NCBI GenBank assembly: GCA_029953675.1 | Contig: JAMWBK010000011.1 | Location: 1,116,001 to 1,180,000, forward strand | Reading direction: 5' to 3' | Origin: Rhodosorus marinus CCMP1338 | Lineage: Eukaryota; Plantae; Rhodophyta | Length of the DNA: 64,000 nt | Notes under the pieces: model-generated | What the model was told of the DNA's origin: nothing | The model's database searches: none | What the model saw: the letters and a program-made list of their open reading frames with translations, nothing else | Shown here: piece by piece, positions 1 to 51,340 of the stretch | How the letters are laid out: every line of letters begins with the position of its first letter | Position numbering within the stretch: the first letter of the stretch is position 1 | Program-made: the position numbers and the translations under genes

Positions 1-1406
1 CGTAGAAGATTCTGTTGCATCTCCTGGCCGGTTCGGTGCTTCCGCAGCAGCCAAATCTTCCGCTCAACGACTTTTAGGACCGGCGCTAAGCCGGTTGGAA
101 ATCTCAAGTCGACAGTTTCGGCGTTTTTCCTGCTGAGATTCTGTAACATGATGTAACCCTTGTCTCGATTGGCGACAGCGTGCACGGCCAGGTTGGGCGT
201 GTTGGAGTAGGAGTACACGAAGTCGCCCTCGATGCCTTTCAAGAGCTCAAAGTACTTCACCAAAGGCGTCCATTTTTGCTTCCTGTCTTTGCCGCCCTCA
301 GTCAATGCCCACGGATACCTGTTCCAGTGGTTACACCTGCGATCGTTTGGGTCGAGGATCAGAAACGGAATGATCTTGAGGACGCTATCGTGGATTCTTA
401 GCGTGCTCATGAACGCGCTGAAAGCCTCTGAAAGGATAAAAAAGTCGCGACTATTCAGGGGTTTGGCAGATATATAGTGCTCCTTGTTGTACCACCGGGT
501 GTCATAGCCCCCAGATTCTGTAATCATATACTTGAACGGAGCAGATCGGTTGGCGTGGTAGAAGTAGTTCTCCAGAAGGTCCAGGTTGGCGTCTTGAACC
601 GCCCCACCGGTGTTGTAAACATGCTCGGAGAAGAAGCTCAGACATCCTGCTTTCAAAGCGTTGTCGATGAAGTTCTTCGTGCGCACGCGCCAGCGGTCAA
701 AGTCATCCTGATCTGGTCTTGCCGTCGCCGCAGCTGGACCTCCAACCATGAAAAAATTATCTTTCGATGTCACGCTCGCACAGAATCGACCAGTAATCTC
801 GCCAAGTCTCGCTACCACGCTCTCTTGCTTCTCATTGGGGAGCTTGAAGTCCCTAGACCTTGTAAACGGCTCGTTGAAAGTCTCGATGTACTTTGGCGGA
901 GGATACCCTTCCTCCGCGTTGAAAAAGTATTCAAGAAACTTCGGAACCCATTTTGCCGCAGCCTCAATTCGGCTTGGTGGATCATAGAACTTTTCAATCA
1001 CATCGGCCTTGTCGACTGCTACTCGATCAGAGCTAAGAAACCGTTTCTCCAACGGATCGCACAATCTACAGGTTGTCCTTTTAGCAAATAATATCCCGTC
1101 TTCAACTGCAGAATCCATTCGGTTCGGGAAGTTGTCAGACGCGCCGAACGCGCCCTCACCGGCTGACCGACCAAACTGCACCCCCAGGTCATCCATTACG
1201 TATTCCATCATCTCCCGAGCGTTCGCTGGAGAACCGCTATTCCCATGGGCTTGGACAAACCGTGCACGGCTAAAATCCCGCTTTTCGTTCGTGACCAACG
1301 TCGCCCAAAAGTCGACCGTCACCGTCGCCCCCATGGCTCCGGAACTCAGAACCAACACCGCGGTGAGGACACCCACCAGAGCTCCCACACAGTTCCTTGG
1401 TTTCAT
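1..1406 (-). CDS. GH86-like beta-porphyranase/agarase paralog 1 (secreted; 3' end beyond window start; absent from ORF track)
   Basis: Manual translation from ATG at 1406 gives MKPRNCVGALVGVLTAVLVLSSGAMGATVTVDFWATL...KYIETFNEPF...MVGGPAAA...FSEHVYNTGGAVQDANLDLLENY...MITESGG...RYPWAL..., read open to position 1. It is collinear with the three other paralogs and has a signal peptide and both catalytic-Glu motifs. Confidence 0.88.
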   Translation of the reverse strand, partial: MKPRNCVGALVGVLTAVLVLSSGAMGATVTVDFWATLVTNEKRDFSRARFVQAHGNSGSPANAREMMEYVMDDLGVQFGRSAGEGAFGASDNFPNRMDSAVEDGILFAKRTTCRLCDPLEKRFLSSDRVAVDKADVIEKFYDPPSRIEAAAKWVPKFLEYFFNAEEGYPPPKYIETFNEPFTRSRDFKLPNEKQESVVARLGEITGRFCASVTSKDNFFMVGGPAAATARPDQDDFDRWRVRTKNFIDNALKAGCLSFFSEHVYNTGGAVQDANLDLLENYFYHANRSAPFKYMITESGGYDTRWYNKEHYISAKPLNSRDFFILSEAFSAFMSTLRIHDSVLKIIPFLILDPNDRRCNHWNRYPWALTEGGKDRKQKWTPLVKYFELLKGIEGDFVYSYSNTPNLAVHAVANRDKGYIMLQNLSRKNAETVDLRFPTGLAPVLKVVERKIWLLRKHRTGQEMQQNLL

Positions 1407-3184: not shown

Positions 3185-5161
3185 TTAACACTGGTCCTTT
3201 CCTGTGAGTGAATTCAACAGGCAGCAAGAACCTCCCCCGCAGGTGTCTACCTCCAACAAAAAAGTGCTGATGTAACCCCCTGAATCCGGAAACTTGACCC
3301 GCACGACAGGGTTCTTTTGAGATGCGAGAAACTTGAGAGGAACCGATATTTCGTACGTCCCAAAATAGGTCTTGTGGTAGTCCCTCTTGCCGCCGGAAAT
3401 CCTCGGGTCAAAGTTGGAGAATTTCTTTCCGTTAATCCATACATCTGGCTTGTTTTTTAGACTCTCGCGTCGATTTTGAGATATCCGCACTCTCGCAACA
3501 CCCGATCGAGAAGGTAGTCTGGCAAAGGTCGCTCTTATGGCCCTTCCCTTCTCTATTCGATACGGAAAGTTTAATCGTTTTCCCTTGTCAGTGGAAACCC
3601 TCATGACGTACCGCCTGAAACGCCCAATCGATCGCTTCTCGCTCATCTTTTTCTTGAAGATCACTTGCATCACGTACATGGCCTCTGGTCGGAGAAGGAT
3701 GTTCTTTGGCACAGACTTTCTGCCCTTGTTGCTCCAAATAATCTTCCCAGCGCGAGGTATTTCCTGCTTTCGGTCTGCTCGTCCTGGCTTCCTAGCGTTA
3801 AGCCATACCTGCCGGATGATGACCTTCTTCGCTGCTCGTCCTACCCCGTAGGGAAGCCTCAAAGATGTGCGGTGGGTTTTTCTCGGATGTAGGTTCTGCA
3901 TCATGATGAACCCAGACTGGCGATTCGCCACAGCGTGGACTTTGATGTCTGCGTGTGAAGAGTGTGAGAACGCGAACCGACCGCTGACTCCCCTCAACAG
4001 CTGAAAGTACCGAAGGAGAGGAGTCCACCTGATCTTTTTGTTTCCCACTTTTTCGATCAACGACCACGGATATCGGTATTTTTTCGTACTCCGTGGATCA
4101 GTAGGATCCAGGGTCAGGAACGAGACAATCTTCTGAACGTTGTCGTGGACCCTCAGCAGCGACATGAAATTCTTGAAGTTTTCGGCAATGATCAGAAAGT
4201 CTCTGCCCGATCGAGGCGGACTGGCGACGTTCTTTCTCTTGCTGAACCACGTTTTGCTGTAGGAACCCATCTCGGAGACGACGTACTTCATGGGTTGTCT
4301 CTTCTTGTTTCTTCGAGCCGTATACGTCTCCATCAGATCCAAGTTGCCGTCGAGAACACCCCCGCCAGTATCGTAGAGATGTTGAGATACAAAGTCCAGG
4401 CATCCAGCAGACTTCGCTTGGTCAATGAAAAGCCGGACTCGTCGCTTGAAGTGGTTGAAACCCTCGTAGTGAGGCCTCGTGAAGGCTGTTGCTGGGCCGC
4501 CGATGACCATCCCTGGGTTTCTTGCCTTCACGCTTTTGCAGAGCCTTCCACATATCCTGGCAAGTCTCCGGATGACACTGACCTCAGACTCGCGACCACT
4601 CCGCCGGAACTCCCTCCACCTTATAAGGGGTTCGTTCCAGCACTCGTAGAACATGGGCTTTGGTAGTCCCTTCCCCTTGTTGAAGAACAACTCAAAGTAT
4701 CTCGGTGCAAAGCTTATAGCTGCATTGGTTTTCGCCTTACTCTTGTGGAACTCTTTCAGCACGTCGGCCCGATCTGTAGCGATTCGATGCGGATTGATGT
4801 TCTTAGTAAGCAGCGGATTGTATTTCGGATCCTTTGCGTTGATTTTCTTCTGCCCATCGCGCCTCAATCTCGCTAGACTTAGTCGTCGCGGAAAGTTGTT
4901 GGATCCGCTGAATGGTCCCTCATTTGATGATCTACTGAAAGAAACCCCTAGGTCATTGACCATATACCTCATAAATCCCCGTGCATAGATCGGAACGCCA
5001 AAGTTTCCGTGTGCGTTGACAAACTTTCTTCGGTTGAAATCTTTCTTCCCATGTGTCCTCAACGTCGTTGCAAAGTCGACGGTGATCCTCTGCGCACCAG
5101 CATGATGAGAACACGCCAAAATCAGGAGTGCTCCCAGCAGTAAAACAGATCCCAGCTTCAT
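3185..5161 (-). CDS. GH86-like beta-porphyranase/agarase paralog 2 (secreted, catalytic module only, K/R-rich), 658 aa
   Basis: Intronless ORF with a signal peptide. Motifs FYECWNEP, IGGPATAF, FVSQHLYD, NLDLMETY and VVSEMG, plus a C-terminal beta-sandwich, match the layout I recall for bacterial GH86 porphyranase A. Confidence 0.85.
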   Translation of the reverse strand: MKLGSVLLLGALLILACSHHAGAQRITVDFATTLRTHGKKDFNRRKFVNAHGNFGVPIYARGFMRYMVNDLGVSFSRSSNEGPFSGSNNFPRRLSLARLRRDGQKKINAKDPKYNPLLTKNINPHRIATDRADVLKEFHKSKAKTNAAISFAPRYFELFFNKGKGLPKPMFYECWNEPLIRWREFRRSGRESEVSVIRRLARICGRLCKSVKARNPGMVIGGPATAFTRPHYEGFNHFKRRVRLFIDQAKSAGCLDFVSQHLYDTGGGVLDGNLDLMETYTARRNKKRQPMKYVVSEMGSYSKTWFSKRKNVASPPRSGRDFLIIAENFKNFMSLLRVHDNVQKIVSFLTLDPTDPRSTKKYRYPWSLIEKVGNKKIRWTPLLRYFQLLRGVSGRFAFSHSSHADIKVHAVANRQSGFIMMQNLHPRKTHRTSLRLPYGVGRAAKKVIIRQVWLNARKPGRADRKQEIPRAGKIIWSNKGRKSVPKNILLRPEAMYVMQVIFKKKMSEKRSIGRFRRYVMRVSTDKGKRLNFPYRIEKGRAIRATFARLPSRSGVARVRISQNRRESLKNKPDVWINGKKFSNFDPRISGGKRDYHKTYFGTYEISVPLKFLASQKNPVVRVKFPDSGGYISTFLLEVDTCGGGSCCLLNSLTGKDQC

Positions 5162-14146: not shown

Positions 14147-17100
14147 ATGGCGATTTTTAAGGGAATGTGGTTATCGACAGCTGTCATTGCGGCGCTTTTG
14201 TTGTCGATTGTACAGTGCCAGCGTACGAACCGATTTGAGGCCATTGTGAGGGTAGACTTTGGGACGACGTTGCAGACTGGCGATGTGTCGAGGTTCTCGA
14301 GAAGGAGGTTCATTAACGGGCATGGGAATTTCAAGCCCAACGCGAGGATCCCGGAGGAGATGTTGGATTACCTTACCGAGGAGCTCAAGGTTTCGTTCAG
14401 TCGTTCGAGCGCTGGGCCGTTTCGGGGTGGCAACTTTCCCGACAGGACGACTTCAGCGCAGATTGAGACGGACGGACAGAAAGATCTGTTCCTGAAGACG
14501 TGCAAGTCGTGTAATCGATATCGACTGAGGTTCGTCAGCGACGAAAGGATCGTAACTGACAGTCCGTACCTCATACCAGAGCTGACGAAGACCAGCGCTA
14601 CCACAGCGGCGGCCGCAAAGTACGCCGGAAGGTACTTCAAGCACTTCTTCACTGAGGACGATCGATTCCCAAAGCCAAAGTACTATGAATGTTACAACGA
14701 GCCAATGGGAAAGGCTCGAGAGCTGAAGAAAAAGGGGGAGTCAGACTTTGAATTTGTCAGCAGGATCTCCCAGTTTTGCTCGGACATCTGTGTCGAGGTT
14801 ATGAAGGAAAATCCGGACATGATGGTTGGTGGACCTGCCGCCGCCTTCACGAGGCCCTACTTCAAGGAGTTTGGCCTCTTCAATTCACGAATGAGGAACT
14901 GGATGGACGTGGCCGCAAAGACGAAATGCCAAACGTTCGTGTCGGAGCACCTCTACAACATCGGAGGAACCGTAGCGGACGCAAACATGGACCTGATCGA
15001 GTCGTACTCCGCGTGGCTGAGCGCGGATGGGAAGCCACAAAAGTACATCGTGAGTGAGATGGGTCAGTACGTTTCGAAGTGGTACAATAAGAGTGGATCG
15101 GCGATGGAGGCGCTGCCGGCAAGGGACTTCTCGATCATGCACGAAGCGATGCGAGTCCTGTTGTCGATGATGAGAGTGCCGGACAACGTCCTCCAGGTGG
15201 TTACTTTTATCAATCTAGAGACCATGGCAGATCGGGATATCACGAACGGTAATCGGTATCCGTGGAGTCTGATCGAAGAGAAGAGCAACGGGCGACTAGA
15301 GTGGTCACCGCTGATCAGATACTTTGAGATCTTGGAGGGTATGGATGGAGACTTTGTGTACTCCAGTTCAGACCACATGGACATCACTGTCCACGCCGTT
15401 GCGACGATGAAAGAAGGCTACATTATTATGCAGAACATCGGTTCGCGTAATGTGACCGTCACACTCGAATTCCCGTACGGCAGGGACATGATCAAGGGCT
15501 ACGAGAGAAGACGGTTGGGACTCATACAGAGGGAAAGGACCAAAGCTGAGCGGGATCAGCTGCTTAGATTTGGTGGGGACTTGCTTTGGGACACGGAACG
15601 TGTGGATGCGAACCCGGGTTTCACGACCCAGCTTCCGGATGAGATTATGGTGGAGGAGGACGAAATAACCGTCCTGAAGGTGGTATTCGATGATCCGTCG
15701 AGGGACAACAGGAGAGTCCAGAGAACCAGGCACTACCCCACGAGAATACGAGACCATACAGGAAAAGAGCCCGACTTCCCCGCGCCAATTAGCAAGAACC
15801 GGAAGATTGACTACTACTTCGAGGATGTCCCCAACACTCCCGGCGGTATGGTGGATATCAGAATCTCCCACTCGAGAAAATTTGGGCTATCGGAGAAGCC
15901 CAAGGTGTTCGTGAACAATGTAGAAGTGCCACAGGAGGACTTTAGCGACGACGTCGCAGGCGGATTCAAGCTGTTCGATGAAAACTTTTACGGCGTGTTT
16001 CTGGTTCATTATCATCTTGAGGACCTCGCGTCGAAGACTAGACCGAAGATCTCAGTCGAGTACCCAGACGATGGGGGGCTTATGGTCACGGTAGTTCTGG
16101 AAGTGACCGAATGCACCCGGTCCTCTTGCTGCGTCTTACAACACAGAAAGAACCAGGAGCCATGTAACATTCCCACCGGGGATGTGTTTACTGGGCGGAT
16201 ACGACCGAATCCCACACCCGTACCTGAGCCTACACCAACTCCGACGCCGAGGCCCGAGACTGAGGGCAACCAAGTGCTTTTGGACACGAACTTTGAATCG
16301 AGTTCTTCAAAGGCTTGGAGTCGATCCGGCGGTGCCAAGAAGCAGACAAAAACCAAGCACGGAGGCCAACGTGCCATGGAGCTGCCCTTGGGCGAAGCTG
16401 AGATAAGCCAAGAAGTGGAATTGCTTAGAGGCAAGCGCTATCGCCTGAGGTGCTATTACCTAGGGCGAGTGAAATTGAGCGTTTTCGACTCGGACGGTGC
16501 GGTCGTAGTTGGTGAAAATGAGGCCGTTGAAATTCCGTCTTCGGGCAACAGTAATAGCGCGTGGCACCGGGCCGTGCAGATATTCGACATTAGAAAGTCC
16601 GGAGCTTACAGAATTTTGATCCGTACAAAAGAGAACAACAGCGGGTATGTTGATACATGTGACCTGTATCGGATCGAGAGGCTCGGCACGCCGACGCCGT
16701 CCCCAACGCCTACGCCCACTCCGATGCCTCGAATTGTCGGAGACCAGATTTTCGATAGTCCTGGCTTTGAGTCCAGTTCGAATCCATGGGACAGGAACAA
16801 CGGTGCGAGCTATGAGAGGGCCAGCAGTCTGGTTTACAAGGGCTCCCGCAGCCTCAAGCTTGAAAAGTTCCAATCGACAACTGAGCAGTCAGTGGCGCTT
16901 CGCAAGGGAGGACGGTACCGGTTCAAGTGCTTCGTTCAGGGAGTCGTGAGGATCAAGGTGCGGCTGGGGTCGAAGACGATTGCAAGGACCACTAGTGCAG
17001 ACCTGGAGCCCTTCGAGGGAGGGCCGTGGAGCACGGTGGCCATGGTTTTTACCGTCGACTCGTACGATGATTATACCTCGCAAATCGAGAACACTAGGAA

Positions 17101-19381
17101 CCAACCAGCCTATATCGACGCCTGCACGCTTTACCACGTCGACAAAATTCCGCCGGAGAGTCCCGAGCCGACATCGAGACCCGAACCGACCACTGCCCCG
17201 AGAGAAACCGGCAGGCAGCTCCTAGCCAACGGCTCGTTCGAAGAGAGAACTGGTTGGACGTTGAAGCGGGGCGCAAAGTATCAAAAGCGGGATGAGTACG
17301 CGTTCGTCGGAGGCGATAGCGTTCAGCTTGTGGACGGATCCACCGTCGAGCAGACGGTTGCCCTTCGTGAAGGAGGAAGGTACAGAATGAGGTGTCATTC
17401 CATTGGGGATATTCGTATGGAGGTACTTGACGGTACGCGCTCCGTTACACGATCGAAGGACAGAGACATAACTCAAATTGGAGATGGCCCATGGAACGTT
17501 CTGTCCATGGATTTCAACATCAACAAGTACGACGACTTCAAGGTTAGCGTGTGGAATTTCAGGACGGAATTTGTCTACCTTGATGAATGCACGTTGTACC
17601 ACTTGGACAGGGTTCCACCGAGGACACCGACACCAGAACCAACCCCGGTGGAGACGCCAGTTCCAGTAGTGGGAGATCAACTGCTTAAGAATAGTGGTTT
17701 CGAAGGAGCCTATTCCTGGACGAGGGTGATGGCTGCCTACTTCTCGACGAACGGGGATTTTGTGCAGCGGGGCAAGCAAAGCATGAGGCTGAACAATGGC
17801 TCATCGAACATCAGGCAGAGGGTCGAACTGCGGGCGGGTGGAACGTACCGGCTGCAATGCTATGTGATTGGAAAGGTACAAGCGGAGATTCGTCGGGCCG
17901 GGGCAGCGCTTGCAAGATCGGGGGCCGGGGAGGTTGTTCTGGTTGGGAATGGTCCGTTCAGTCTACTGACCATGGACTTTGATGTTACGAAATATGGGAT
18001 ACACAGCTTGGTGTTGGCAAACGAACAGAATGACCGTTCGTTTGTTGATAGCTGCTCACTGTATAGCGTAGGGGAAACTCCACCACCGACGCAAACACCC
18101 GAGCCTACTCCGAGCGAGACCACCGCGACTACACCAAAACCTACTCCGAGCGAGACCACCACGAAGACGCCTAATCCCACTCCGAGCGAGACCACCGCGA
18201 CGACACCAAAGCCTACTCCGAGCCAGACCACCGCGACACCAAAGCCGACTCAGAGCGAGACCACCACGAAGACTCCTAATCCTACTCCAAGCGAGACCAC
18301 GACGAAGACTCCTAATCCTACTCCGACCGAGACCACGACGAAGACTCCTAATCCTACTCCGACCGAGACCACGGGACCAGTCGTGGGCGATCAGATCCTT
18401 GAGAACAATGGATTCGAGACGCGCCGTGATTGGGATTTCAAGCAAGGTGCTAGCCTTCAGGCAAGCGCAGAGTATGTGTTGAACGGGCTCAGAAGCTTGG
18501 TCCTTCCTGTCTATAGGTCAGGCGTTGAACAAACTGTGAGACTTCGAGCTGGTGGCAAATACAGACTCGTGTGCTTTACGCAGGGTGACGTAAGGATGAA
18601 GGCTTTCCTTGGTTCTCGTTTGCTTGCGAGATCGAACGAAGCGAATCGAAGAATCTGGCAAGGAGGCCCCTGGGAAACTATCAGGATGATCTTTGATGTC
18701 AACACATACGCTGACGTGAAAGTGGACGTCTACAACGGCAAGAACACAGCCGCCCGCGTGGACTCCTGTGTTCTCTATCACTTGAACGTTGTACCCCCCC
18801 CGGAGCCCACTGGGAACCCAACTGTGAACCCAACTGCGAACCCAACTGTGAAACCATCCGTTGAGCCCACGCCGGAGCCAACTCAGACCGAGACTCAGGG
18901 CCCAGATGTTACTGAAACAGAGGCTCAAACCGCACAGGCGTCAGCTACTCCTGATGTAGTGATCGTGACAGACGGAAGGGAACTATTGAGTAATCCAGGA
19001 TTTGAGGAGGGCGACGAGGACTGGACGGTTGTTTCAAGGAGGGCATGGTTCGGGGCTGTTGAGCCGAAAATAGACGGCAGTCGACGCTTGCGCCTCCTCC
19101 AATATGCCGCGGCTGTCGAACAGGCGGTTAGCCTTGACCCTGGCAGATATAGACTGTCGTGCTACGTGATCGGACCCGTCGTTTTGAAGATTTTCAGAGG
19201 AGATGAGCAACTGTTCAAGAGCCTGCCGCTGAACAAGAAGCTTTACCTTGATGGACCATGGAGCACGCTCTTCGTGAGCTTCCGAATCACTTCAGCGGAA
19301 GACTTGAAGCTGCGAATCTTTAACTCTCAGAATTCTGACAGCTTCGTTGATGGCTGCTCCCTTACCGCCGTTGCGCGCTAG
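14147..19381 (+). CDS. GH86-like paralog 3: signal peptide + catalytic module + 6 CBM-like modules with P/T linkers, 1744 aa
   Basis: Intronless ORF with YYECYNEP, VGGPAAAF, SEHLYN and IVSEMG motifs. Six ~135-aa repeats start with G(N/D/R)(Q/E)xxxxxxFE and have a CBM4/9/16/22-like signature (NxxFE...G...Q.V.L..G..Y...C...D.C). Confidence 0.88.
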   Translation: MAIFKGMWLSTAVIAALLLSIVQCQRTNRFEAIVRVDFGTTLQTGDVSRFSRRRFINGHGNFKPNARIPEEMLDYLTEELKVSFSRSSAGPFRGGNFPDRTTSAQIETDGQKDLFLKTCKSCNRYRLRFVSDERIVTDSPYLIPELTKTSATTAAAAKYAGRYFKHFFTEDDRFPKPKYYECYNEPMGKARELKKKGESDFEFVSRISQFCSDICVEVMKENPDMMVGGPAAAFTRPYFKEFGLFNSRMRNWMDVAAKTKCQTFVSEHLYNIGGTVADANMDLIESYSAWLSADGKPQKYIVSEMGQYVSKWYNKSGSAMEALPARDFSIMHEAMRVLLSMMRVPDNVLQVVTFINLETMADRDITNGNRYPWSLIEEKSNGRLEWSPLIRYFEILEGMDGDFVYSSSDHMDITVHAVATMKEGYIIMQNIGSRNVTVTLEFPYGRDMIKGYERRRLGLIQRERTKAERDQLLRFGGDLLWDTERVDANPGFTTQLPDEIMVEEDEITVLKVVFDDPSRDNRRVQRTRHYPTRIRDHTGKEPDFPAPISKNRKIDYYFEDVPNTPGGMVDIRISHSRKFGLSEKPKVFVNNVEVPQEDFSDDVAGGFKLFDENFYGVFLVHYHLEDLASKTRPKISVEYPDDGGLMVTVVLEVTECTRSSCCVLQHRKNQEPCNIPTGDVFTGRIRPNPTPVPEPTPTPTPRPETEGNQVLLDTNFESSSSKAWSRSGGAKKQTKTKHGGQRAMELPLGEAEISQEVELLRGKRYRLRCYYLGRVKLSVFDSDGAVVVGENEAVEIPSSGNSNSAWHRAVQIFDIRKSGAYRILIRTKENNSGYVDTCDLYRIERLGTPTPSPTPTPTPMPRIVGDQIFDSPGFESSSNPWDRNNGASYERASSLVYKGSRSLKLEKFQSTTEQSVALRKGGRYRFKCFVQGVVRIKVRLGSKTIARTTSADLEPFEGGPWSTVAMVFTVDSYDDYTSQIENTRNQPAYIDACTLYHVDKIPPESPEPTSRPEPTTAPRETGRQLLANGSFEERTGWTLKRGAKYQKRDEYAFVGGDSVQLVDGSTVEQTVALREGGRYRMRCHSIGDIRMEVLDGTRSVTRSKDRDITQIGDGPWNVLSMDFNINKYDDFKVSVWNFRTEFVYLDECTLYHLDRVPPRTPTPEPTPVETPVPVVGDQLLKNSGFEGAYSWTRVMAAYFSTNGDFVQRGKQSMRLNNGSSNIRQRVELRAGGTYRLQCYVIGKVQAEIRRAGAALARSGAGEVVLVGNGPFSLLTMDFDVTKYGIHSLVLANEQNDRSFVDSCSLYSVGETPPPTQTPEPTPSETTATTPKPTPSETTTKTPNPTPSETTATTPKPTPSQTTATPKPTQSETTTKTPNPTPSETTTKTPNPTPTETTTKTPNPTPTETTGPVVGDQILENNGFETRRDWDFKQGASLQASAEYVLNGLRSLVLPVYRSGVEQTVRLRAGGKYRLVCFTQGDVRMKAFLGSRLLARSNEANRRIWQGGPWETIRMIFDVNTYADVKVDVYNGKNTAARVDSCVLYHLNVVPPPEPTGNPTVNPTANPTVKPSVEPTPEPTQTETQGPDVTETEAQTAQASATPDVVIVTDGRELLSNPGFEEGDEDWTVVSRRAWFGAVEPKIDGSRRLRLLQYAAAVEQAVSLDPGRYRLSCYVIGPVVLKIFRGDEQLFKSLPLNKKLYLDGPWSTLFVSFRITSAEDLKLRIFNSQNSDSFVDGCSLTAVAR
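18085..18375 (+). repeat. Intragenic 36-bp (12-aa) tandem repeat, TPSETT(A/T)(T/K)TP(K/N)P x ~8
   Basis: Seen in both DNA and translation, between CBM-like modules 4 and 5. Confidence 0.85.
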
Positions 19382-20276
19382 TCGGTATCGACCCAGGAGC
19401 AGATGGCAAGCGAGCGTGTAAACTAGTTACTGATATCTTAATCAAGTAAATAAGAAAACATTCGATTGATTTCACGGGACTATGAACGTTGATTCAAATG
19501 ACCACGGCGCAGCACTCTATCTCCAGACGCGCCAAGTTTGTAGATGCGGAGTCCGTTTCCTGGAATTTTCAGGACTCGCTTGCGTCTTCTGACGATTGTG
19601 GTGCCAACCGGTAGAGGACAATCACCACCTCATATGCGAACACACACACTTCACCAGAGCGGCTACCTATTTTTTTTGACCGGTGGCTCACCGGCACTCC
19701 TACAGGAGGACCCCGGTGATCGAGAACTATTTCGGAAAGGTGGGGTGAGGGGCTATAGATAGATGCTCATCCCTTCCCGCTATATCCAAAACAAGGATTA
19801 AAAATTATCGTTTATTTAATGGAATAGACCTACATAACGCATTTGGTCTATATTAAGCAGGCTTAGCATAGAACGTATTTATTTCAGATCGATGTGGCAA
19901 TGAGCTAATCTCCACATAGCTCAAGCAGGAGCAAGGAGCAGGAATTTCTTAGTACCCAACCGAGGGAAGGTACCTTTTCAAACCGTTGCAAATGGAGAGC
20001 GCACAGACGTGTATGGAAAACCTGCACACTGACTGGAGCATGATTCGCGTACTCAGCGGGAAGATCTCTGTAGCCCCTTGCAGAATCCTTAGTATTAACA
20101 AGTTTTTGACCGACGTCCGGAGCTCTCTTCACCGTTCGTTTCCCATGAGCTATATCTCCATAGTACACTATCCGACTCTGTGGTCGGGCTGGCGCTCAGA
20201 GTTCATACCTGCGTGGAAGACGGTGGGTTAGTTTGAGCTTGAGTTAAGATACAACCAGAGACGTAAGTGATAGCAC

Positions 20277-23200
20277 TTACATAGCACAGCTGTCTACGTA
20301 GGTCCAGCTCGCCCGTTCCGTCTTGACGCTGACGATGTAGTTGCCATCATCGGGGGCCGTAAAATGGAGAGTCCGCTTCTCCCATCTGGTATCAAGGGAT
20401 TCGGTTCTACGATCAGTAATCACCATCACGACTCCATTTTGAATTATCCTCATGAAAACACTGGTCCTCTTCAGAAAAACACACGAAAGACTGTACTCGC
20501 CTCCCGCCTCAAGCACGACCCTCTGCTGGGCTTCGCTCATGCCAATTCGGAGTCTCAAGCTGTGGGTTCCTTGATAAACGGTTAGACTGTCGATAACCGC
20601 ACTTCCGATGAAATTCCATGGAGCAGGCTTGCCATCGTCAAAGCCTGCATTCACGAGGATCTGACCATCAACAACCGGAGTGGTGGGAACTGGTTTCTCA
20701 GAGGGACTGAGCGTTGCCGTTGGTGAGGGCGTACCCTCCGATGGCGATGTCGTGGGAGGATTCGTAGGCCGTGGCGTCGAAAGCTCTGTAGGTACCGGTG
20801 TCGGGGAATCCGTCTGCATCGGCGTCGGAGGAATCGTTGGCACTGCCGTTGGAAGGTCCGTAGGCACTGCCGTTGGAGGTTCCGTAGGCATTGCCGTTGG
20901 AGGTTCCGTAGGCAATGCCGTTGGAGGTTCCGTAGGCACTGCCGTTGGCGGATCAGTAGGTTCTGGCGTTGGGGAATCAGTAGGCTCTGGTACATCGACC
21001 TCGAAGACTTGAGCTTGGTCGACATACACGAGGTGGCCTCGTGAACTTCCAAAGCTGACCTTGTAAGTAGCCCTCGAGTCCGTTACAAACGACATCCCAT
21101 GCTCCTGCCAGCTGGGTGCTATTCTGTTCTGCGATTTTTCCTGGAACACCACGCCGCTTCCGTCACTGACGCTGATCATCAAAACACCAGGACCATAGAC
21201 CATCACTCGAATCGCATACGTAGCACCCTTTAGCAATTCCACCTCCTGCGACACGCTGCTTGTGTCGAAATCCAATTTGCACGACCTGGAACCTTCGAAA
21301 TTTCGGATTGTATCGTACCTAGCAGCACCCTCTAAGACCCATCTCTCGGATCCGCCTCCAGGTCCAAACCCTGGTGCCAAGAACAGCTGCAATGATCCGT
21401 TTGGAATCTCTGGCAATGGAGATGGCGTCGGAGTGAGCTCCGGCGTCGGAGAGCTAGTTTGTGATGGAGTTGGTCGAGGCGTATCCGTTGGAATGAATAC
21501 CGTCTCCTCCAGCGAGCAGTCATCGACAACTGCAAAGCTTGAAAATTCGGTGAACAGATTGATCTCGTACACTCCCTGCCTCAATGTCGTAAACAGCAGA
21601 GTCCTCTTCGTCCACACGGGGCCCGAATCACTGGGATCACTCTCGTTTCGAGCGATCTCCTCCCCGTTCACATCGACGCTCATTATCAGCTCCCTGTTGT
21701 TGCTCACGAAACACGTCAGCAGAAACTGTCTATTCCGCCGGAGGGCTGCTTCCTGTTTCACCCTCGAAACAGAGCGGGTCGGGAGTCTCACGCTTCTGGC
21801 TCCACTTCGTACCAGACTTGTTTCCACTCTTGCCGAACCCGAGAATACCCACGGTCCTTTTGTCCCCTTCTCAAAGTCCGGGTCCAACAACAGCGGTGCG
21901 ACTGTCGGCGTTGGCGATGGCGTTGGCGTTGGCGTTGGCGTTGGCGTTGGCGTTGGTGTTGGCGTTGGTGTTGGTGTTGGCGTTGGTGTTGGCGTTGGTG
22001 TTGGCGTTGGTGTTGGCGTCGGTGTCGGCGTTGGTGTTGGCGTTGGCGTTGGCGTTGGTGTTGGCGTCGGTGTCGGCGTTGGCGTCGGAGTTGGCGTTGG
22101 TGTTGGCGTTGGTGTTGGCGTCGGTGTCGGCGTTGGTGTTGGCGTTGGCGTTGGCGTTGGTGTTGGCGTCGGTGTCGGCGTTGGCGTCGGAGTTGGCGTT
22201 GGCGTCCGCACGAATTCAAGAAGCGAGCAGTCATCGACAATAGCGAAATCTGTAGGATCGGTGGACAGCTTGATCGTGTGGTCGCCACTTCGACTACTCG
22301 TCCAGGAAAGCGTTCTCCTCGCCCATCCGTCGGCATCTCCCGGCGGTGGATTGGATCTCGCAACGACGTTTCCACTACCTATCAATTCCATGATCAGAGG
22401 CAAATTCCTCCTAACTCTACATTCAAGTGTGTACTCGTACAACTCCGTTAGCGACACCACTTGTGTCGCCGAGTTCTGGCCCACTCGAAGCCGAAGACTA
22501 AAGAACCCATCAAGAACAACGTCAGGATCAAAGTAACCGTTCTCGACAACCCAGTTGCCCTGAGTGTTCAGCTCAAAGCTAGGATCCGCCAGAATCTGGG
22601 CTGGAGGCAGTGCAGTTGGCAATTCCGTCGGGCCAGGGCTCTGAGTAGCCTCAGGATTCACCTCATTCAGCGTACAAAAGTCAATAAAGGCCGAATCGTC
22701 CCTTCCGTTGCTAAGGCTCACAATGTGTAGACCGTTGTTTCTAGCTTCGAATTCCACGATTCTCTCACCCCATCTGGTAGTCAGCTGATTCCAATTTCTG
22801 TTGTCCGATACAACGATCTCTCCAGTTAATTCACGAGCCACGCTGATTATAAACGGACTGTTGTTCAGCACTATACATCGGATCCTATATGTGCCGTCCT
22901 TCTCCAGCTGCAAAGACTGTGAAGCGGAACCAATTCCGGGTGGAAGCCGTAGGCTTCGACTACCTTCAAACACCGTGTTTGTTTCAATCCTCGCGTTCCC
23001 AGTGTACACCCAATCTGGCCGGCTAGCCTTCTCAAAACCTGGATCCAGCAGCAGCTGAGGGCCCAGGGATGTGGTGACTTCCGTTGGCTCTGGCCCCATC
23101 GTTGGAGTGGGAGTCTCCACGCTCTCTGTAGTCTCAAACACAGTACAGTAGTCCACCAATGCGGACTCTAAGTCTCCGTTCAGTATGGCAAACTCGTGTG

Positions 23201-26048
23201 GTCCGTTCTTCGGGGCCTCGAATATGACCTGCTTGTAAGCCCAATCTGTACCCACCACTGGAGTCACCCAGTTTGCTGTGTTCGACGCTACCGTTTCCCC
23301 CCGCGAGCTTCGCACCACCAAGTCTAGATCACCACCTTCCACCAGGTAGCATCGGTACCTATAGTTCCTTCCTTTCTCCAGTGGAGCCCTTTCACTCGCC
23401 TCCGCGTCTCCCATTGGAAGCCTCATGCTCATCGTCCCCTCAAGCGCGTTCGATTCATAGAACGCGGCAGTACCTTTCAGGCTCCACTTCGCTGGGGCGA
23501 GATCTTCAAAGCTTGGATTGTCTATCAGCTGCTCACCCACGGTACTGGGATCATTTGGGGGCTTCCAGTTGCTTACTGGAATCGGTGTGCTCTGTGCAGC
23601 ATCTCCAACGAATGTCGGTACAAGAGACTGCGGATAAAGGGTACAAGCATCAGCACTTCCGGCCTGGGACGCTGTCGTCGACAGAGTTAGCTCGTAAATG
23701 TCCTTGTCGGTCGAGTAGAAATCCATCTGTTTTAGTCTCCACGTGGACCCATCGATAGCGGTTGAAGGGCCTTCCTCGTCAACCAACATGAGGAACAGGT
23801 TCGACTGCTTGCGGATGTAAAAGTTCACAGATCCACGCACATGACAAACGAGTCGGTAGCCCAGGTTGGCCTTAAGGTAGATCACCTGCATCGCCTCTGC
23901 AGTTTCTTGGCCGAGCCTCAAGCTGCTTCCGCCCCAGTAGGCCGATGTGGTTGAAATAGATGCACCACCGGACAGCTCCCAGTCGTCCGAACCCTTCTCA
24001 AAGCTCGGATTCTTCAACCTCTGTCCGGTCTCGGGAATCGTCCTAGGCTGATCCCTAGGGTCGTTTGCTGGCTCTGGACAGGCGAATGGTGAGGCTCTGC
24101 CTCCGAGAAGACAGCAGGAACCACCGCTGCATTCATCGACCTCGATCGTCACGGTACTAACGTACCCAGATGAATCGGGGTATAGAACATCAACGTACGG
24201 GCTGGGGTTTGAGTTCAGTATAAGAACCCCTACGGGAATCACGAACACCCCAAAGTACATGCTGTTGTCGTTGCGACCGCCTCCAGGGATCCTCTCGTTA
24301 ACTGATGGTACCTCCTCTCCGTTGATGAAGATCCTGGGACGCGGCTCTTTGCTCCGAACCCGCGCATGCGCTACCCTGATATACGCCATGGCGTTCTTGG
24401 AAGAAGGTATGTCCGCAAAGTAGAATCGGATCGATTCGTCCTTTCGGATCGGCACGGGAAATTCCACACCATTCCCAGTCGCGTCAGTCACCCGCTGAAG
24501 ATAATGTCTCGATCGCTCGACTGTTCTACGGTCTATAATGGGCTTCTTAAACATCACTTCGAGTACCGTCATTCCCTCCGGACGCATACGAATCGTCTCT
24601 GGAATCGCATTCATCGTCTCGTTCGACCACATCACCTTGCCTGGTCGGCGAATATTCTGCCTTTCATCCTCATCCGTCGAGTCCTCATCTCTCAACCAGA
24701 GCCTCCTCTCTACGACGGTTTCAACCTCCTCGATTCCATACGGAAAGTTGAGCGCGACGTCGTAGCTTGTCTCCGCGTGAGTGTTCTGAAGCATTACATA
24801 GCCTCTGTCCGAGTTCGCCACGGCATGGACTTTGATATCTGTTTCTGGAGAGTAGGAGTAGGTAAAAGAGCCCTCGATACCTCTCAACAGCTCCCAGTAG
24901 TACAGAAACGGAGTGTAGATATATTCTTCATCAGAGGTCTTCTCAACGATCGACCAGGGATAAGGGTTCTCCATGCGCTGCTTCGCTGTGGTGATCTCCA
25001 GCGTATGAAAGCAGATGAGCTTGATCAGGTTATCATGGACTCGGAGCTGACTCATCATGATCTGGAAGCACTCCTTCATGATCACAAAGTACCTTCCTCC
25101 CAAGGGCTCGCTCGAGATTCTCGTACTCTTGCTGTACCAGCTTCTTTGGTACGCTCCAGACTCAGTGATCGCGTACGGCATCACCTTTTTGGGGGTATGC
25201 ACACTATTGACATATGTATAGGTCTCGACAAGGTCTATGTTCGCATCCTGTACGGATCCACCTCCGTCGTAGATATGTTCACTGACAAAGCCGAGACAGT
25301 CATCTTGCATGGTGGTGTCCAGCCAGAGCTTCATTCTGTTTCTGAAGAGGGCAAATTCTTGATGATGCGGCTTTGCGTTTGCAGCCGTAGGACCACCGAC
25401 TAGGATGTCTGGATGCTCTGCAGTAACGCTCTTGCAGATCTCGTTGCATTGCTCGGCGATTCGAGTGTTTACGTCAATTTCTGTCTCGTCGGGACGGCCT
25501 TCAAGCTTGAGCGTCTTCCATTTGTTGAAGGGCTCGTTGAAACACTCGTAGTAACCAGGTCTGGGATACCGCACCGAGTCATCGAAGAACCACGTGAAGA
25601 AGTCCGCTGTGTACTTGCGAGCCGATTGTGTGAGCGATTGGCTGTTGATCCACTGCCTCATAACCACAGCATCGTCGGTGACAAATCTTTCTCTCGTAAT
25701 GAATCGTCTACGGTTCGCATCGGAGTTCTCATTGGACTTGAACTTCACGTCTTGGTCCCCATCAGCTTGCGCAGTGTCCAACGCATTCGGAAAGTTATCC
25801 GAACCTCCAAATGGTCCACCAGCTGTCCTTCCAAAATGAACTCGTAGCTCGTCGGCGAAATACTCCATCTTATCCTCGATTACCCTGACTACAGAATAGT
25901 CTCCATGGGCGTTGATGAGCCGCTCCCTGTTGAATTCGGATACGCCATTTGTGCTCAACGTGGTCCAAAAGTCCACATCTACCTCCACTGCGGTGCTCCA
26001 TTCCGCAAAAAGTATGAGCACCACCAGAACCCCTTGCCGGATACCCAT
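20277..26048 (-). CDS. GH86-like paralog 4: signal peptide + catalytic module + 7 CBM-like modules with P/T linkers, 1923 aa
   Basis: Intronless ORF with [31 protein letters not shown] and AITESG motifs. Seven repeats start with (Q/P)xLxxPxFE-like sequences. It lies tail-to-tail with paralog 3. Confidence 0.88.
20815..20965 (-). repeat. Intragenic 24-bp (8-aa) repeat PTA(V/L/M)PT(E/D/I)(P/L) linker
   Basis: ggcactgccgttggaggttccgta-like units; translation [24 protein letters not shown]... Confidence 0.8.
21907..22206 (-). repeat. Coding hexanucleotide array of 50 units encoding (TP)~50
   Basis: GG(C/T/A)GT(T/C) hexamers on the + strand, translating to about 100 aa of TPTP... in paralog 4. 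Confidence 0.95.
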
Positions 26049-32352: not shown

Positions 32353-33275
32353 ATGGCATTTGCAGGGTCGTTTGGAGCGGGAAAGCGCGGAGCAAAGCGC
32401 GGAGCAAAGCACGAGGTATGTAGTGCTGCGTGTGGAAGGATTGAAGTCCTGTATGAGGACGAGTGGATGCTGGCTGTGGATAAGCCTGGGTCCATGTTGA
32501 TGCACAGGAACATCAAGCTGACACGTGGGAAGGAGGAGAAGTATGTAATTGATGAGCTGAAGAAGCAGCAGAACGATAAGGAAATATACGTCGTTCACCG
32601 ACTGGATAGAGCAACCAGTGGGGTTGTGCTTTTCGCTCGGAGCCCGGAGGTGGTCACTGAACTACAGCGGATGCTTTCCCTTGAAGAAGCTCAGAAAACG
32701 TACCTTGCCCTAGTCCGCGGTTTCACACCGGAGCAATGGGTCAACGACAACCCGCTAACAGACCACGATAGCAAGAAGAAAGTACGGAGAACTGCAAATA
32801 CATCATTTGAGCGACTTCTGACGCTCCAGGCGTCGCGGCTGTCACTCGTTAGAGCGACGCCTAAGACGGGGAGAACAAACCAGATCAGAAGGCACCTCGC
32901 TGGTGACAGAAACCACATCATCGGGGACGTCAAATACGGCAAAGGACGTGACAATCAGTTCATGAGGGATCGGTACGTGCAGGAAAGGACAGAGACAGAT
33001 TCATCTTTTCCGAAATCGCTTAAGACTCCCCCCCCCCCGGTCGCTAATGGTTGCGAAATCACTCCAAATCTTGCAGGTATGGGCTTCCTAGACTATTTCT
33101 ACACGCAAGAAGGCTAACAATACGTCATCCGAGAACTTCCGAGCTCATGACCATTGAAGCACCGCTGCCCCTTGACCTCTTCGACTTTTTGGCGGCGCTG
33201 CCCGATTTTTCAGCTTACACTCATCCTCCTATTACTGATCTAGGTGTTTCTATTGGCAAACATGTTTCCTTATAA
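32353..33275 (+). CDS. RluA-family RNA pseudouridine synthase, probably plastid-targeted (intron 32973-33076)
   Basis: VDKPGSML, HRLDRATSG (catalytic Asp), KTGRTNQIRRH, IIGDVKYG and, after splicing, RLFLHA. N-terminus MAFAGSF... resembles a transit peptide. Confidence 0.92.
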
Positions 33276-34450: not shown

Positions 34451-36043
34451 ATTACAGACAGGCCTGACCACCCAAGCATGCACGCGGGTCGGCTGGGTCA
34501 AGAACATTACAATCCAGCCGAGTCTTCCGACGAATGCTGGATCAAGCTTAGGGTCCAAACCTTTGCTCATTCTCAGCTTGTGGCACGCCCATTCAAAAGC
34601 CAAATCCAGTTTTCGCGATGAGGATACCTAGGTTGCCTAGTACCTGAACGAAGCTCAACGGTCAAGCCTTTCCAAGCAGCATGTCATCCTCCCACCGGCA
34701 CATAACGGATCTGCCCTGCCAGTCAAGATATTGAGGCTTTTCAAGTCAATCATTATTTAATCAAATCAGTCCAAACGTATAAATCTTCCGTAACGTCCAT
34801 GATGATCAAAACGCAATATATTTTAGATTTTTCTTCTTCTGTACCGCCGAAATATCTTTAACTATTACGAGTAAAGTTCGTACACGCGTCCTAAAATTAC
34901 TGAACTTCTTTTTTCCTCGCTATTTATTGGTTGTAACGTGAAACGAGATAATATTTTAGACGAATGAAACAACCGGCTGCTTTTATGTATTTTTGAAATA
35001 AAAACAATTATCCAAAGTTAAGGAAAAGTCTTCGGTTTGTTATTGGGGGTAGAAGGAAATGACAAATAGTTCTTTATTCTTTGAAATGCGAAGATATCGT
35101 GCGGCTAATTATACTCAAGGGGGAGAGGCTAAATCCGTGTACATTAAATTTATCATTAGGGGAGGTGTAGGATTTGCTAATTTCTGCTTTGACGAGGATT
35201 TTGTTTTCGCTTTTCTAATATGTAGTACGCAATGACTGCGAAGGAGAGAGGGAGGCGGGGGGGGGGGAGGAAGGTTTGTTTCTATTCTAGCTCTGTGAAG
35301 ATTAAGATTTTTTTGAGGGGTTTTCGAGTATGTCGCGTTAGAACGTATCTGGAGATGCTGGCTCTCGGTCTCTCCGTCCTTTGGGGTGCTTTCCAGCTCG
35401 TGAAAGATCTGCACTGAGCGACATGATAACATCTAGAAGCAAGTCGGTTTGCTGCGTGAATCGCCTCACACGAAGACCCTGCTTTTCTATCTTGCTTTTC
35501 TGATCATTCAGCCCTTTTCTCTCCACCCTCCCCTTCCTCCCCCCCCTCCCCCACCAACCCCTATCCCCTCTCAGCCAGGGCCGCTTCAAATAGGTTCAGT
35601 CATGTTCGGGCAACGGAGAAGGTCTGCAGAATCCATCTAAAACCTCACCTACTTTCCCTCCCTGATCGTTCCGTCAACCTGTCTCACCCCACAAACCAGA
35701 AAGCGGCACAAAGGCCAAGGACAAGCCATCCAGCTCGGAAGGCGTTCGTCGATTCTCTTCAATTGATGCTCTGTTGAATCGATTTCTCTATCAAAGCTCA
35801 AGAGCTAGGCAGCATTAGAATTCCTTTCCCTCTCAAAGTCGAGATCAAAAACTTTGATCAATACTGTCAGGAGAGCAAAGCTGTGCTTGTGGAGTCTAAT
35901 GCAGTAAAGAAACGGTTTTTGGTGGGTGAGGTTAACGGCGAGCTGGGTGTATAGACTGAGGAATTTGTTCATTGGCAAGGCTTCCTTATCTGTTTTGTTT
36001 CTGGGGAGGATTGAGGAACAGAGCAGAATTGGTTTTCGTCAGG

Positions 36044-44475: not shown

Positions 44476-45330
44476 TCATGCAGATTCCACTGGGATCACA
44501 TATTCAACCTCGGCTACACGTGGAGCGGAGATCGTTAGAATGCCGTTCTTTAGACCAGCCCTAACTTTTTCGACGTCTACTTGCCCTGGAGTGTAGAACG
44601 AGTATTCGTACTGACGCTGAGAGTCTTCAACAATCATTTTGAAAGCGTGCTTAACCCGGTTCAGGCTAATTTGCTCCTTGGAAACGCCGGGTACTCTTAT
44701 TGAAGTCGAAAACGATCCCTCCTCCTCCTCTACACTGTCTTCAATAGCGACAGAAGTCGGTGATATCTTCGGCACGCTCACAGTTAATACACCGTTCCTG
44801 CAGATTGCCGCGATATCGTCCGCCGAAGCGTCCTTTGGGATTCTGTAATCGTCGGAGAAGTTCCTGAAGTACTGGTTGTTCTCGGCGGTCACCTTGATCA
44901 CCAGTGTGTTTCCATTAACTGTCACCGCGACATTGTCCTTGCTGGCTCCGGGAACCTGATATGCGAGCTTGTAGTCGCTTTCTCCTGGTTCACCAGAATC
45001 CTGAACGATCACATCTCGTGCAGCTTTCTCGGTTTGCTTCGGCACCGTTATCTGCAAAACTCCATTGCTCATCACCGCCTTTGCTTCCTCATGGACTGCA
45101 TTCTTCGGAAGAGCAAATCTTTGATCAAACTGGAACTTTGCGTCTTCTTTTCCAGCCTTGATGTCAAGCTTGTTTCCCACGATTTTCAGCTCCACGGCTT
45201 CTCGACCAACACCGGCCAGTACAATCGTAAACGTGTACCCGGATTCCGTCTCCTCCTGAGACATCCTCGCCCTCGGTCCATACCTCACACTGTCAAACAG
45301 CATCGGCAATCGGAATAGGTCTAGCTCCAT
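44476..45330 (-). CDS. Small heat-shock protein with three tandem alpha-crystallin domains (284 aa)
   Basis: Three repeats end in SNGVLQITVPK, RNGVLTVSVPK and KNGILTISAPR, each preceded by a (A/P)G(V/A)xxxxx segment. ATG at 45330. Confidence 0.9.
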   Translation of the reverse strand: MELDLFRLPMLFDSVRYGPRARMSQEETESGYTFTIVLAGVGREAVELKIVGNKLDIKAGKEDAKFQFDQRFALPKNAVHEEAKAVMSNGVLQITVPKQTEKAARDVIVQDSGEPGESDYKLAYQVPGASKDNVAVTVNGNTLVIKVTAENNQYFRNFSDDYRIPKDASADDIAAICRNGVLTVSVPKISPTSVAIEDSVEEEEGSFSTSIRVPGVSKEQISLNRVKHAFKMIVEDSQRQYEYSFYTPGQVDVEKVRAGLKNGILTISAPRVAEVEYVIPVESA

Positions 45331-45447
45331 TATTTTGTTCGCGTTCGTCTCAAAACACTTGTCTCTCTTCACACAAATTGTCCTCTGATCCATTCTTTGC
45401 CCGAAACTATTTGCTACCGGACTCCACAAATACCTCCATGACCACCC

Positions 45448-50262: not shown

Positions 50263-51340
50263 TCCACCTTTCCTATTTCCAAAAACCAAACAAACTCCTC
50301 CAAACAAAAAAAAAAACCCAAATCCTCTCTACTCCCTACACCTAAATACCAACCTACCCTCCACAACCCCAATTCCTATTCACAAATTTACACCTTTCCC
50401 ATCCATCATACCAAAACCTCCCTCCACCATCTCCCTCCTCCCCATACCACAATTCCCTTCAACTCAATCCTCCCAAAGCTCCTTCCTCCTCTCACTACTA
50501 TTTATACAAAAATTCTCCCCCCCCCCCCCTTCCCCAACAACTGAAACGCCCGCATAAAATTTCATAGATGGATGAAGTCATCCGTCTGATAAGGACACAA
50601 AACCCTCCAAATTTTGGCAAAGCAGATGTTTTCTCTTTGTCCTTTCGATCAAAAAAATAAACGAAAAAGTTGTTCCAAAAACTAACGAAACAAACAGAAC
50701 TTTGGAGAACGGTAGGAAGGAAGCCACCTCCACCCCCACCCCCAAAACACTGCTAATTTCAATGAAAGCCATAACATTTCATATAAATAATAGGCTCTGT
50801 TTACTAGAGTATGTTTATATGTCATATACAAATTCAATCTTTATATAATATTGACAGATATTATATGATATTTTACTATTGTGTGAGGTATATAGATTGA
50901 ATAATGAGGTGACAGGTTTGAGATTTGTTTTTTTGAATTTGTTAAGGGAGTGGTTATTTTATTGTATTTTTGCGGTCGGGAGATATTGTTTATTTGAAAT
51001 GTTTTGAATGAGCTTCGATTTTGAGGTAATAATTTCGTTTTTTCTTGGAGAAACTTTGTTGTTTGGTGTATAGTTTTGTAAGATTTGGGATCTGAGTTGG
51101 AAGGTTCTCGAGATGTTTTTTGGGTGATTTTTGGAGAGAGGAACAATCTTTAATGAGTGATTGGTTGAATGGGGAATAAACAGAAGATTCTTGCCAATCA
51201 TAAGGTCTGTGATAGGGTTGTTCTATGTTGGTAGACCAATCGGGAGGAAATGCGTGCTCCCCGGCGAAAGGATACTTGAATATTTAATTGTAAACTCCAG
51301 CCTGGCAAAAGTACAGAACTCTCAAACTGTATCTGAGACC

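Follow-up and report, generated by a model that had tools for sequence, protein, structure and literature searches.

Among described carbohydrate-binding modules (CBMs), the nearest named relatives of the tandem modules analysed here are CBM16 and the 'CBM16-like' modules found in marine bacteria that degrade polysaccharides. The tandem modules follow catalytic regions resembling glycoside hydrolase family 86 (GH86) in two neighbouring genes of Rhodosorus marinus, a unicellular red alga of the Stylonematophyceae, six in paralog 3 (p3) and seven in paralog 4 (p4), within a 64-kb stretch of assembly GCA_029953675.1 (JAMWBK010000011.1:1,116,001-1,180,000). This whole stretch constitutes the window, and all coordinates given below refer to it unless otherwise indicated. 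The ligands of CBM16 are glucomannan/cellulose and kappa-carrageenan (PMC5802718), and a CBM16 member binding porphyran is credited to Mei et al. 2024 in the passage of PMC11678492 that cites that work. Matching titles suggest that this member corresponds to Protein Data Bank (PDB) entry 8XMZ, annotated as a 'novel porphyran-binding carbohydrate binding module'; a literature search on the entry itself found nothing relevant.

The likeness of the Rhodosorus modules to CBM16, represented by 8XMZ and by CBM16-1 and CBM16-2 of Caldanaerobius polysaccharolyticus Man5A (2ZEW, 2ZEX, 2ZEY, 2ZEZ, 3OEA and 3OEB), comprises a beta-jelly-roll fold with template-modelling (TM) scores of 0.71-0.78, a size of ~135-145 amino acids (aa) and the alignment of an N-x-G-F-E...W segment, a Q..L..Y strand and a C-terminal D strand; both are also attached to enzymes whose substrates are glycans of algae or plants. 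Identity, in contrast, amounts to 13-19%, profile E-values run from 1.7e-5 (8XMZ) to 5e-3 (Man5A), and the Rhodosorus modules differ in being eukaryotic, in forming arrays of 6-7 and in carrying a pair of cysteines absent from the sampled bacterial relatives. The 'CBM16-like' domain of PL18/PL7 alginate lyases (aly-SJ02, 4Q8K) provides the best sequence match among solved structures, and a metagenomic alginate lyase (P0064) bears two related modules. The alginate-lyase domain, however, is N-terminal, present in 1-2 copies and cleaved (PMC5651945), whereas the Rhodosorus modules are C-terminal, present in 6-7 copies, separated by linkers and conserved.

Long arrays have also been recorded in bacteria. 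Bacterial CBM_4_9 proteins (P0006, P0008, P0009, P0010 and Paenibacillus WP_379185539) combine 5-10 tandem homologous modules per chain and share the F-E/W/Q/Y/D signature, but they match PF02018 strongly (E 1e-41 to 1e-87) and lack the cysteine pair; the first four, when scanned, yielded no recognised catalytic domain, showing dockerin, MAM, MBG or cadherin-like domains instead. On the catalytic side, bacterial GH86 enzymes (BuGH86, 5TA0/5TA1; Aga86A-type, 8H97) share with p3 and p4 the barrel, two beta-sandwiches and the NEP and nucleophile-Glu motifs, and differ from them in that p3 and p4 have a eukaryotic host. The complete architecture, a GH86-like region followed by homologous modules, recurs in Purpureofilum apyrenoidigerum P0078 and in Logan protein P0070 (1043 aa), but each of these has two modules, the cysteine pair is absent, and an extra ~110-aa C-terminal domain without Pfam match is present.

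Against this background, we find that the Rhodosorus modules are a divergent, lineage-specific, probably disulfide-stabilised branch of the known CBM4/9/16/22 superfamily, and not a new fold. The two genes that carry them are long open reading frames (ORFs) without interruption, in convergent orientation:

14147..19381 (+): p3, 1744 aa; signal-like N-terminus, GH86-like region (~aa 1-680), 6 modules
20277..26048 (-): p4, 1923 aa; signal-like N-terminus, GH86-like region, 7 modules

Module arrays and superfamily membership

Delimited from the translations, the 13 modules measure 129-137 aa:

16268..16678 (+): p3 module 1, 137 aa
16742..17143 (+): p3 module 2, 134 aa; modelled with AlphaFold
17213..17608 (+): p3 module 3, 132 aa
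17675..18073 (+): p3 module 4, 133 aa
18389..18787 (+): p3 module 5, 133 aa
18977..19378 (+): p3 module 6, 134 aa; C-terminal
23625..24026 (-): p4 module 1, 134 aa
23127..23534 (-): p4 module 2, 136 aa
22656..23060 (-): p4 module 3, 135 aa
22209..22601 (-): p4 module 4, 131 aa
21498..21899 (-): p4 module 5, 134 aa
20994..21392 (-): p4 module 6, 133 aa; the sole module without either cysteine; modelled with AlphaFold
20280..20666 (-): p4 module 7, 129 aa; C-terminal; best single Pfam CBM_4_9 match

A hidden Markov model (HMM) of the modules, searched over the six frames of the window, recovers these 13 and nothing else, and their starts lie within a few bases of the positions given in an earlier reading of the sequence alone (the sequence-only reading). 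Cross-validation with E-values scaled to 1e6 sequences gave consistent results in both directions: an HMM built from the p3 modules alone recovers all seven p4 modules (E 1e-19 to 9e-9), and a p4-trained HMM scores the p3 modules at E 1e-23 to 1e-11. Chance or low-complexity repetition is rejected on the basis of these cross-validated models.

Alignment of the 13 modules reproduces the shared motif described in the sequence-only reading, with invariant residues at F9, W17, G33, L39, L52 and D129 and near-invariant ones at Q48, Y58, C62, W99, F106 and C131, against a module-to-module pairwise identity of 19-44%. The pairing of cysteines described in the same reading holds for 12 of the 13 modules and fails for p4 module 6, which has lost both and has V and A in their place; the ortholog of this module in another strain is likewise devoid of both cysteines.

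The attribution of the modules to a CBM4/9/16/22-type jelly-roll is borne out by structure prediction. Using a 14-sequence alignment as input, AlphaFold models p3 module 2 with a predicted local distance difference test score (pLDDT) of 95.9 and a predicted TM score of 0.88, and the cysteine-less p4 module 6 with a pLDDT of 93.5; both models are all-beta, with 10-11 strands and the same fold. Foldseek comparison of these predicted models with the PDB gives probability 1.00, TM 0.64-0.79 and E-values down to 1e-8, with 8XMZ, CBM16 (2ZEY, 2ZEX and 3OEA), CBM61 (2XOM), CBM4-2 and CBM22 as top matches, at 12-20% identity to solved structures. At the sequence level, the module profile finds its best PDB match in 4Q8K, the aly-SJ02 N-terminal domain (E 2.8e-10 over ~110 residues), followed by 8XMZ (1.7e-5), CBM22 and CBM61 (5e-4 to 7e-4) and Man5A CBM16-1/-2 (2e-3 to 5e-3); the values for CBM16 are weak and much like those for CBM22 and CBM61.

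Family profiles detect the modules unevenly. Pfam CBM_4_9 (PF02018) scores 44.7 bits on the whole of p4 against a gathering threshold of 25.9, with module 7 as the best stretch, and gives no match on p3 at E≤1; of the isolated modules, two match CBM_4_9 (best E 9e-4) and the other 11 of 13 have no match at E≤1. An NCBIfam scan returned weak matches only, to the related families NTTRR-F1 and choice-of-anchor C. In a profile-profile comparison with hhalign, the 13-module profile matches 26 bacterial domains from PF02018-positive proteins with a probability of 99.1% and E 4.3e-19 over 129 columns, a result that secures the homology of the modules to the CBM4/9/16/22 superfamily. The signature residues F, E, W, Q, Y and D of the 13 modules are conserved in ~80-97% of bacterial domains; among 522 domains from outside the Rhodosorus group, F is present in 486, E in 489, W in 500, Q in 411 and Y in 508, and D in nearly all of those reaching that column. 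As judged from these alignments, F-E..W..Q..Y..D is a superfamily-wide core signature, and not a new one. The N-terminal Glu and C-terminal Asp of the modules are presumably part of a structural Ca2+ site, by analogy with CBM4/16/22 structures.

An exhaustive profile search of representative sequences retrieved 1572 proteins at E≤1e-3 and 271 at E≤1e-10, many of them with 2-10 tandem copies; the related proteins sampled are mostly bacterial. The best non-Rhodosorus matches score strongly against PF02018 (E 1e-41 to 1e-87), and their partner domains are DUF642, dockerin, MAM, a T9SS tail, alginate lyase and a GH30 C-terminal domain. Domain scores reach 62-150 bits in Rhodosorus, 64 in Purpureofilum and up to 54 in bacteria. 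Queried with the module alignment, a word-indexed search yielded a single match, a metatranscriptome fragment of 128 aa that shares ~90% identity with p4 module 7. The sequence-only reading had presented the modules as a candidate new carbohydrate-binding family. Beyond the rank of a divergent subfamily, that proposal is not supported, in view of the p4 Pfam score, the hhalign match and the 1572 related proteins, of the conservation of the motif in bacterial domains, of the existence of bacterial arrays of 6-10 modules and of UniProt, where two Rhodosorus relatives are already named 'CBM-cenC domain-containing protein'.

The distribution of the cysteine pair, assessed among the best 150 homologues, sets the Rhodosorus modules apart. 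Both cysteines are found in the Rhodosorus genome or MMETSP proteins P0003, P0004, P0007, P0011, P0012, P0015, P0021, P0024, P0030, P0042, P0046 and P0052 and, besides these, in a short JGI fragment (P0083) and in one domain of the 2033-aa protein P0032. In the sampled non-Rhodosorus domains the two columns are hydrophobic, with F/A/V/G/L at one and V/I/F at the other. On this sampling the pair appears to be lineage-specific, essentially confined to Rhodosorus among those 150 homologues. Because both cysteines were gained together at core positions and lost together in p4 module 6 and its ortholog, they are predicted to form a strand-to-strand disulfide in the secretory pathway.

GH86-like enzymes, gene models and array growth

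The sequence-only reading had placed the modules on a galactanase-type enzyme, and the upstream regions of both genes agree with that placement:

14147..16246 (+): p3 GH86-like region; TIM barrel with NEP and SEMG Glu motifs, then two beta-sandwich domains (Porphyrn_cat_1, BPA_C)
24030..26048 (-): p4 GH86-like region; NEP and TESG motifs, Porphyrn_cat_1, BPA_C

Pfam detects here PF18206 and PF18040, the two beta-sandwich domains of beta-porphyranase A, and phmmer against PDB sequences matches BuGH86 of Bacteroides uniformis (5TA1, E 5.9e-29) and a GH86 beta-agarase (8H97, E 1.1e-21), with an alignment that takes in both beta-sandwich domains as well as the barrel. Conserved NEP and (S/T)E-x-G motifs occur in the four paralogs of the window, in three other Rhodosorus homologues and in P0070, and they align to those of BuGH86. 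By analogy with the family, the NEP Glu would act as acid/base and the (S/T)E-x-G Glu as nucleophile, the catalytic pair of clan GH-A. All paralogs begin with a hydrophobic, signal-peptide-like N-terminus, and p3 and p4 are, by prediction, secreted-type modular GH86-like hydrolases that resemble agarases and porphyranases. A word-indexed homologue search with the catalytic domain, either alone or as a 7-sequence profile, returned two Rhodosorus paralogs only and thus brought up no GH86 relatives from bacteria or from other eukaryotes. One searchable library of open papers yielded none on GH86 genes in red-algal nuclear genomes, including those of Rhodosorus and Porphyridium.

Public gene models obscure this architecture. 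The GenBank model of p3 begins at Met448 and spans 1297 aa, and that of p4 is a spliced, 1266-aa product covering 20277-24554 only; both omit the GH86 barrel. The true form of p3 and p4 is that of continuous ORFs with signal-like starts, the public models being N-terminally truncated, and an exact look-up with full-length p3 gave no match because of this truncation. MMETSP Rhodosorus transcripts code for GH86 with modules, and for the p4 C-terminus.

The two genes belong to a cluster. The window contains four GH86-like paralogs, and at least five are counted when the DNA just to its left is included, every one of them a continuous ORF. Along the cluster the paralogs carry 1, 2, 0, 6 and 7 modules. 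The two remaining paralogs of the window are:

3185..5161 (-): paralog 2, GH86-like, complete, 658 aa; signal-like start, catalytic motifs, zero modules
1..1406 (-): paralog 1, N-terminal part; 986-aa ORF that crosses the left window edge, with 2 modules at its end

The DNA on the left was covered from contig position 1,104,446 to 1,125,744. The C-terminus of paralog 1 carries a separate annotation, NDN08_007292. A further paralog of 823 aa with one module lies ~6-8.5 kb left of the window; the public annotation gives its C-terminal end as a protein of 176 aa, NDN08_007290 or NDN08_007291 (identical products).

The Cys-paired module is not restricted to p3 and p4. It occurs in several short gene models adjoining the window, at least two of which are really the C-termini of GH86 paralogs, and on a 2.47-Mb contig NDN08_000645 (P0024) encodes a trypsin-like S1 peptidase followed by a PT-repeat linker and two Cys-paired modules. 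NDN08_000651 (P0003), a GH86-like gene with one module, lies a few genes away from the peptidase gene. That the module recurs on a peptidase and in further GH86 paralogs suggests a general use, as a tag that targets secreted proteins to the matrix.

Extended linkers separate the modules, as the sequence-only reading had described; they measure 18-109 aa and consist of Pro/Thr/Ser to 37-98%. Two of the longest are repetitive:

18074..18388 (+): Thr/Pro-rich linker between p3 modules 4 and 5, 105 aa; 8 x 12-aa repeat
21900..22208 (-): (Thr-Pro)~50 linker between p4 modules 4 and 5, 103 aa

At the DNA level, the former comprises a 36-bp unit repeated ~8 times at 18082-18372 and the latter the hexamer GGCGTT repeated ~50 times at 21907-22205, resembling a microsatellite. 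The long linker between p4 modules 6 and 7 differs by 40 aa between strains, and linker length is therefore probably polymorphic. The modules, for their part, are ~80% identical between strains and align without indels. For p4 module 7, comparison with an 85%-identical transcript contig gives a synonymous divergence (dS) of 0.55, a nonsynonymous divergence (dN) of 0.06 and a dN/dS of 0.11, a ratio indicative of purifying selection on the modules. The MMETSP0011 ortholog is ~80% identical in protein, and strains labelled 'R. marinus' therefore appear to be quite divergent. A 1013-bp contig of JGI 3300016967, with 85% DNA identity to the p4 3' end (window 20278-20972), suggests as its source a diverged strain or species resembling Rhodosorus.

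In a neighbour-joining tree, p3 modules 2-6 and p4 modules 2-7 cluster apart, with both first modules near the base. These separate clusters indicate that the arrays grew by independent duplication inside each gene, long ago. What is particular to Rhodosorus is the cysteine pair, the independent within-gene expansion to 6-7 copies and the module's reappearance on an S1 peptidase and other GH86 paralogs. Likening the arrays to a cellulosome, as the sequence-only reading had done, finds no counterpart in the domain content of p3 and p4, where Pfam gives no cohesin or dockerin match at E≤1; a dockerin occurs only in the bacterial homologue P0008, and the analogy is rejected.

A proposed role in the algal matrix

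Red microalgae are encased in a sulfated polysaccharide matrix, the outer part of which dissolves into the medium and is continually released (PMC9693049). We hold with moderate confidence that the module arrays anchor a GH86-like enzyme multivalently in the capsule or wall of sulfated polysaccharide that surrounds the alga itself. In the mechanism that we propose, a module would have gained the cysteine pair at two core positions and then have multiplied in each gene independently. Extended Pro/Thr-rich linkers, probably O-glycosylated, would present the six or seven modules, each a weak putative binder, and weak single-module binding may add up by avidity, keeping the enzyme in the capsule or wall, where its GH86-like domain would cut galactan-type linkages of the matrix in the course of wall remodelling, daughter-cell release or capsule shedding. 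More generally, the module could function as an address tag that directs secreted proteins to the alga's own matrix.

Several considerations weigh against this picture. The composition of the Rhodosorus matrix was not found in the papers searched, and the activity of the GH86-like domain on a Rhodosorus polymer is a conjecture. The residues conserved in the 13 modules are those of the superfamily core and are therefore uninformative on the ligand, and the modules share only 19-44% identity with one another. The same fold serves in non-CBM roles, with Cry and Vip3 protoxin domains and hapalindole-type cyclases among the Foldseek matches, and the best PDB sequence match, the aly-SJ02 N-terminal domain (4Q8K), is a 'CBM16-like' domain that is cleaved at maturation and proposed to be a folding aid, with no carbohydrate binding reported (PMC5651945). 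The predicted disulfide rests on the co-occurrence of two cysteines. Lastly, no transcript spanning the whole of p3 or of p4 was observed, and the catalytic barrel is missing from the GenBank models of both.

A more far-reaching version of the same picture can be advanced only tentatively. It would make of the modules a disulfide-stapled CBM lineage specific to red microalgae that recognises their sulfated capsule, serves as a matrix address tag and, once characterised, would found a new CAZy CBM family and yield the first probe of that matrix, and of the attached enzymes the first functional eukaryotic GH86 members, remodelling the alga's own wall. To our knowledge, no CBM has been described for the sulfated heteropolysaccharide capsule of unicellular red algae.

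The modules might instead bind foreign carbohydrate, be it agar- or porphyran-type galactans from other red algae, the exopolysaccharide of bacterial biofilms or dissolved polysaccharide, in the service of nutrition or epibiont defence. Such a target would suit the origin of the solved GH86 members matched, which belong to Bacteroides and to marine bacterial agarases, the annotation of the closest structural neighbour as a porphyran-binding CBM and the occurrence of related modules on a bacterial alginate lyase, on GH30 and on T9SS-secreted proteins that attack foreign algal polymers. Rhodosorus, however, is photosynthetic and enclosed in its own polysaccharide capsule, a tandem-expanded family conserved in Purpureofilum (Stylonematophyceae) fits a housekeeping wall function, and a module on a protease fits localisation to the alga's own matrix better than foraging. 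We regard a foreign target as unlikely.

Similarly improbable, in our estimation, is that the modules are not lectin-like at all and act as folding aids, pro-domains, inert spacers or protein-protein interaction domains of an extracellular protein layer. The match to the cleaved aly-SJ02 domain, with its proposed folding role, speaks for this possibility, as does the return by Foldseek of domains from the Cry and Vip3 protoxins, which lie outside the classical CBMs. Yet a chaperone role leaves unexplained why 6-7 diverged copies are under purifying selection, why they are placed C-terminally on long linkers far from the barrel and why they are present on an unrelated protease, and the closest structural relatives with known ligand (8XMZ, CBM16, CBM61, CBM4 and CBM22) are true CBMs.

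A truly new CBM family specific for a red-microalgal sulfated xylo-galacto-glucuronan, a notion that overlaps the anchoring picture, is in our view quite unlikely: the lack of a CBM_4_9 match in 11 of the 13 modules and in p3 as a whole, the 12-20% identity to solved CBMs, profile E-values to CBM16/CBM22/CBM61 of only 1e-5 to 5e-3 and a cysteine pair that is lineage-specific in the sample speak in its favour, but PF02018 homology is secure, domain scores grade from Rhodosorus through Purpureofilum to bacteria without gap, and CAZy requires a characterised founding member, of which there is none here.

Taken as evidence for a new protein family, the finding carries less weight than the sequence-only reading had given it; fold and superfamily are well known. 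Part of its value lies in a little-noticed eukaryotic GH86-like gene family, the presence of which in Stylonematophyceae raises the question of red-algal galactan-rich wall remodelling and of a bacterial origin of the genes. The anchoring of p3 and p4 in the alga's own matrix, if true, would represent a case of a eukaryote adapting a bacterial-type CBM via a disulfide, Pro/Thr linkers and copy-number amplification. The GH86-like cluster, with 0, 1, 2, 6 and 7 modules, constitutes a natural series for the effects of CBM valency in a gel, in which paralog 2 provides a natural 'zero-CBM' control. Should the modules bind the alga's own capsule, they could serve as ready-made probes, small and specific, for the sulfated polysaccharides that red microalgae produce, which are poorly characterised and of commercial interest.

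Genomic surroundings

Elsewhere in the window, Pfam identifies four further ORFs:

32353-33117 (+): pseudouridine synthase ORF
35972-37087 (+): C2-domain ORF
44476-45429 (-): HSP20 ORF, in which three stretches were matched
54020-55021 (-): PWWP ORF

The C2, PWWP, HSP20 and pseudouridine-synthase neighbours indicate a eukaryotic nuclear context. Bacterial contamination is rejected on the basis of the 1.44-Mb contig, the eukaryotic neighbour genes and the presence of relatives in Rhodosorus transcriptomes. A Pfam scan of the ORF at 49516-50307 (-) gave no match. Two ORFs run antisense to p4, at 21262-22536 (+) with 424 aa and at 24366-25403 (+) with 345 aa; they are most likely by-products of a biased, repeat-rich coding strand, and not genes.

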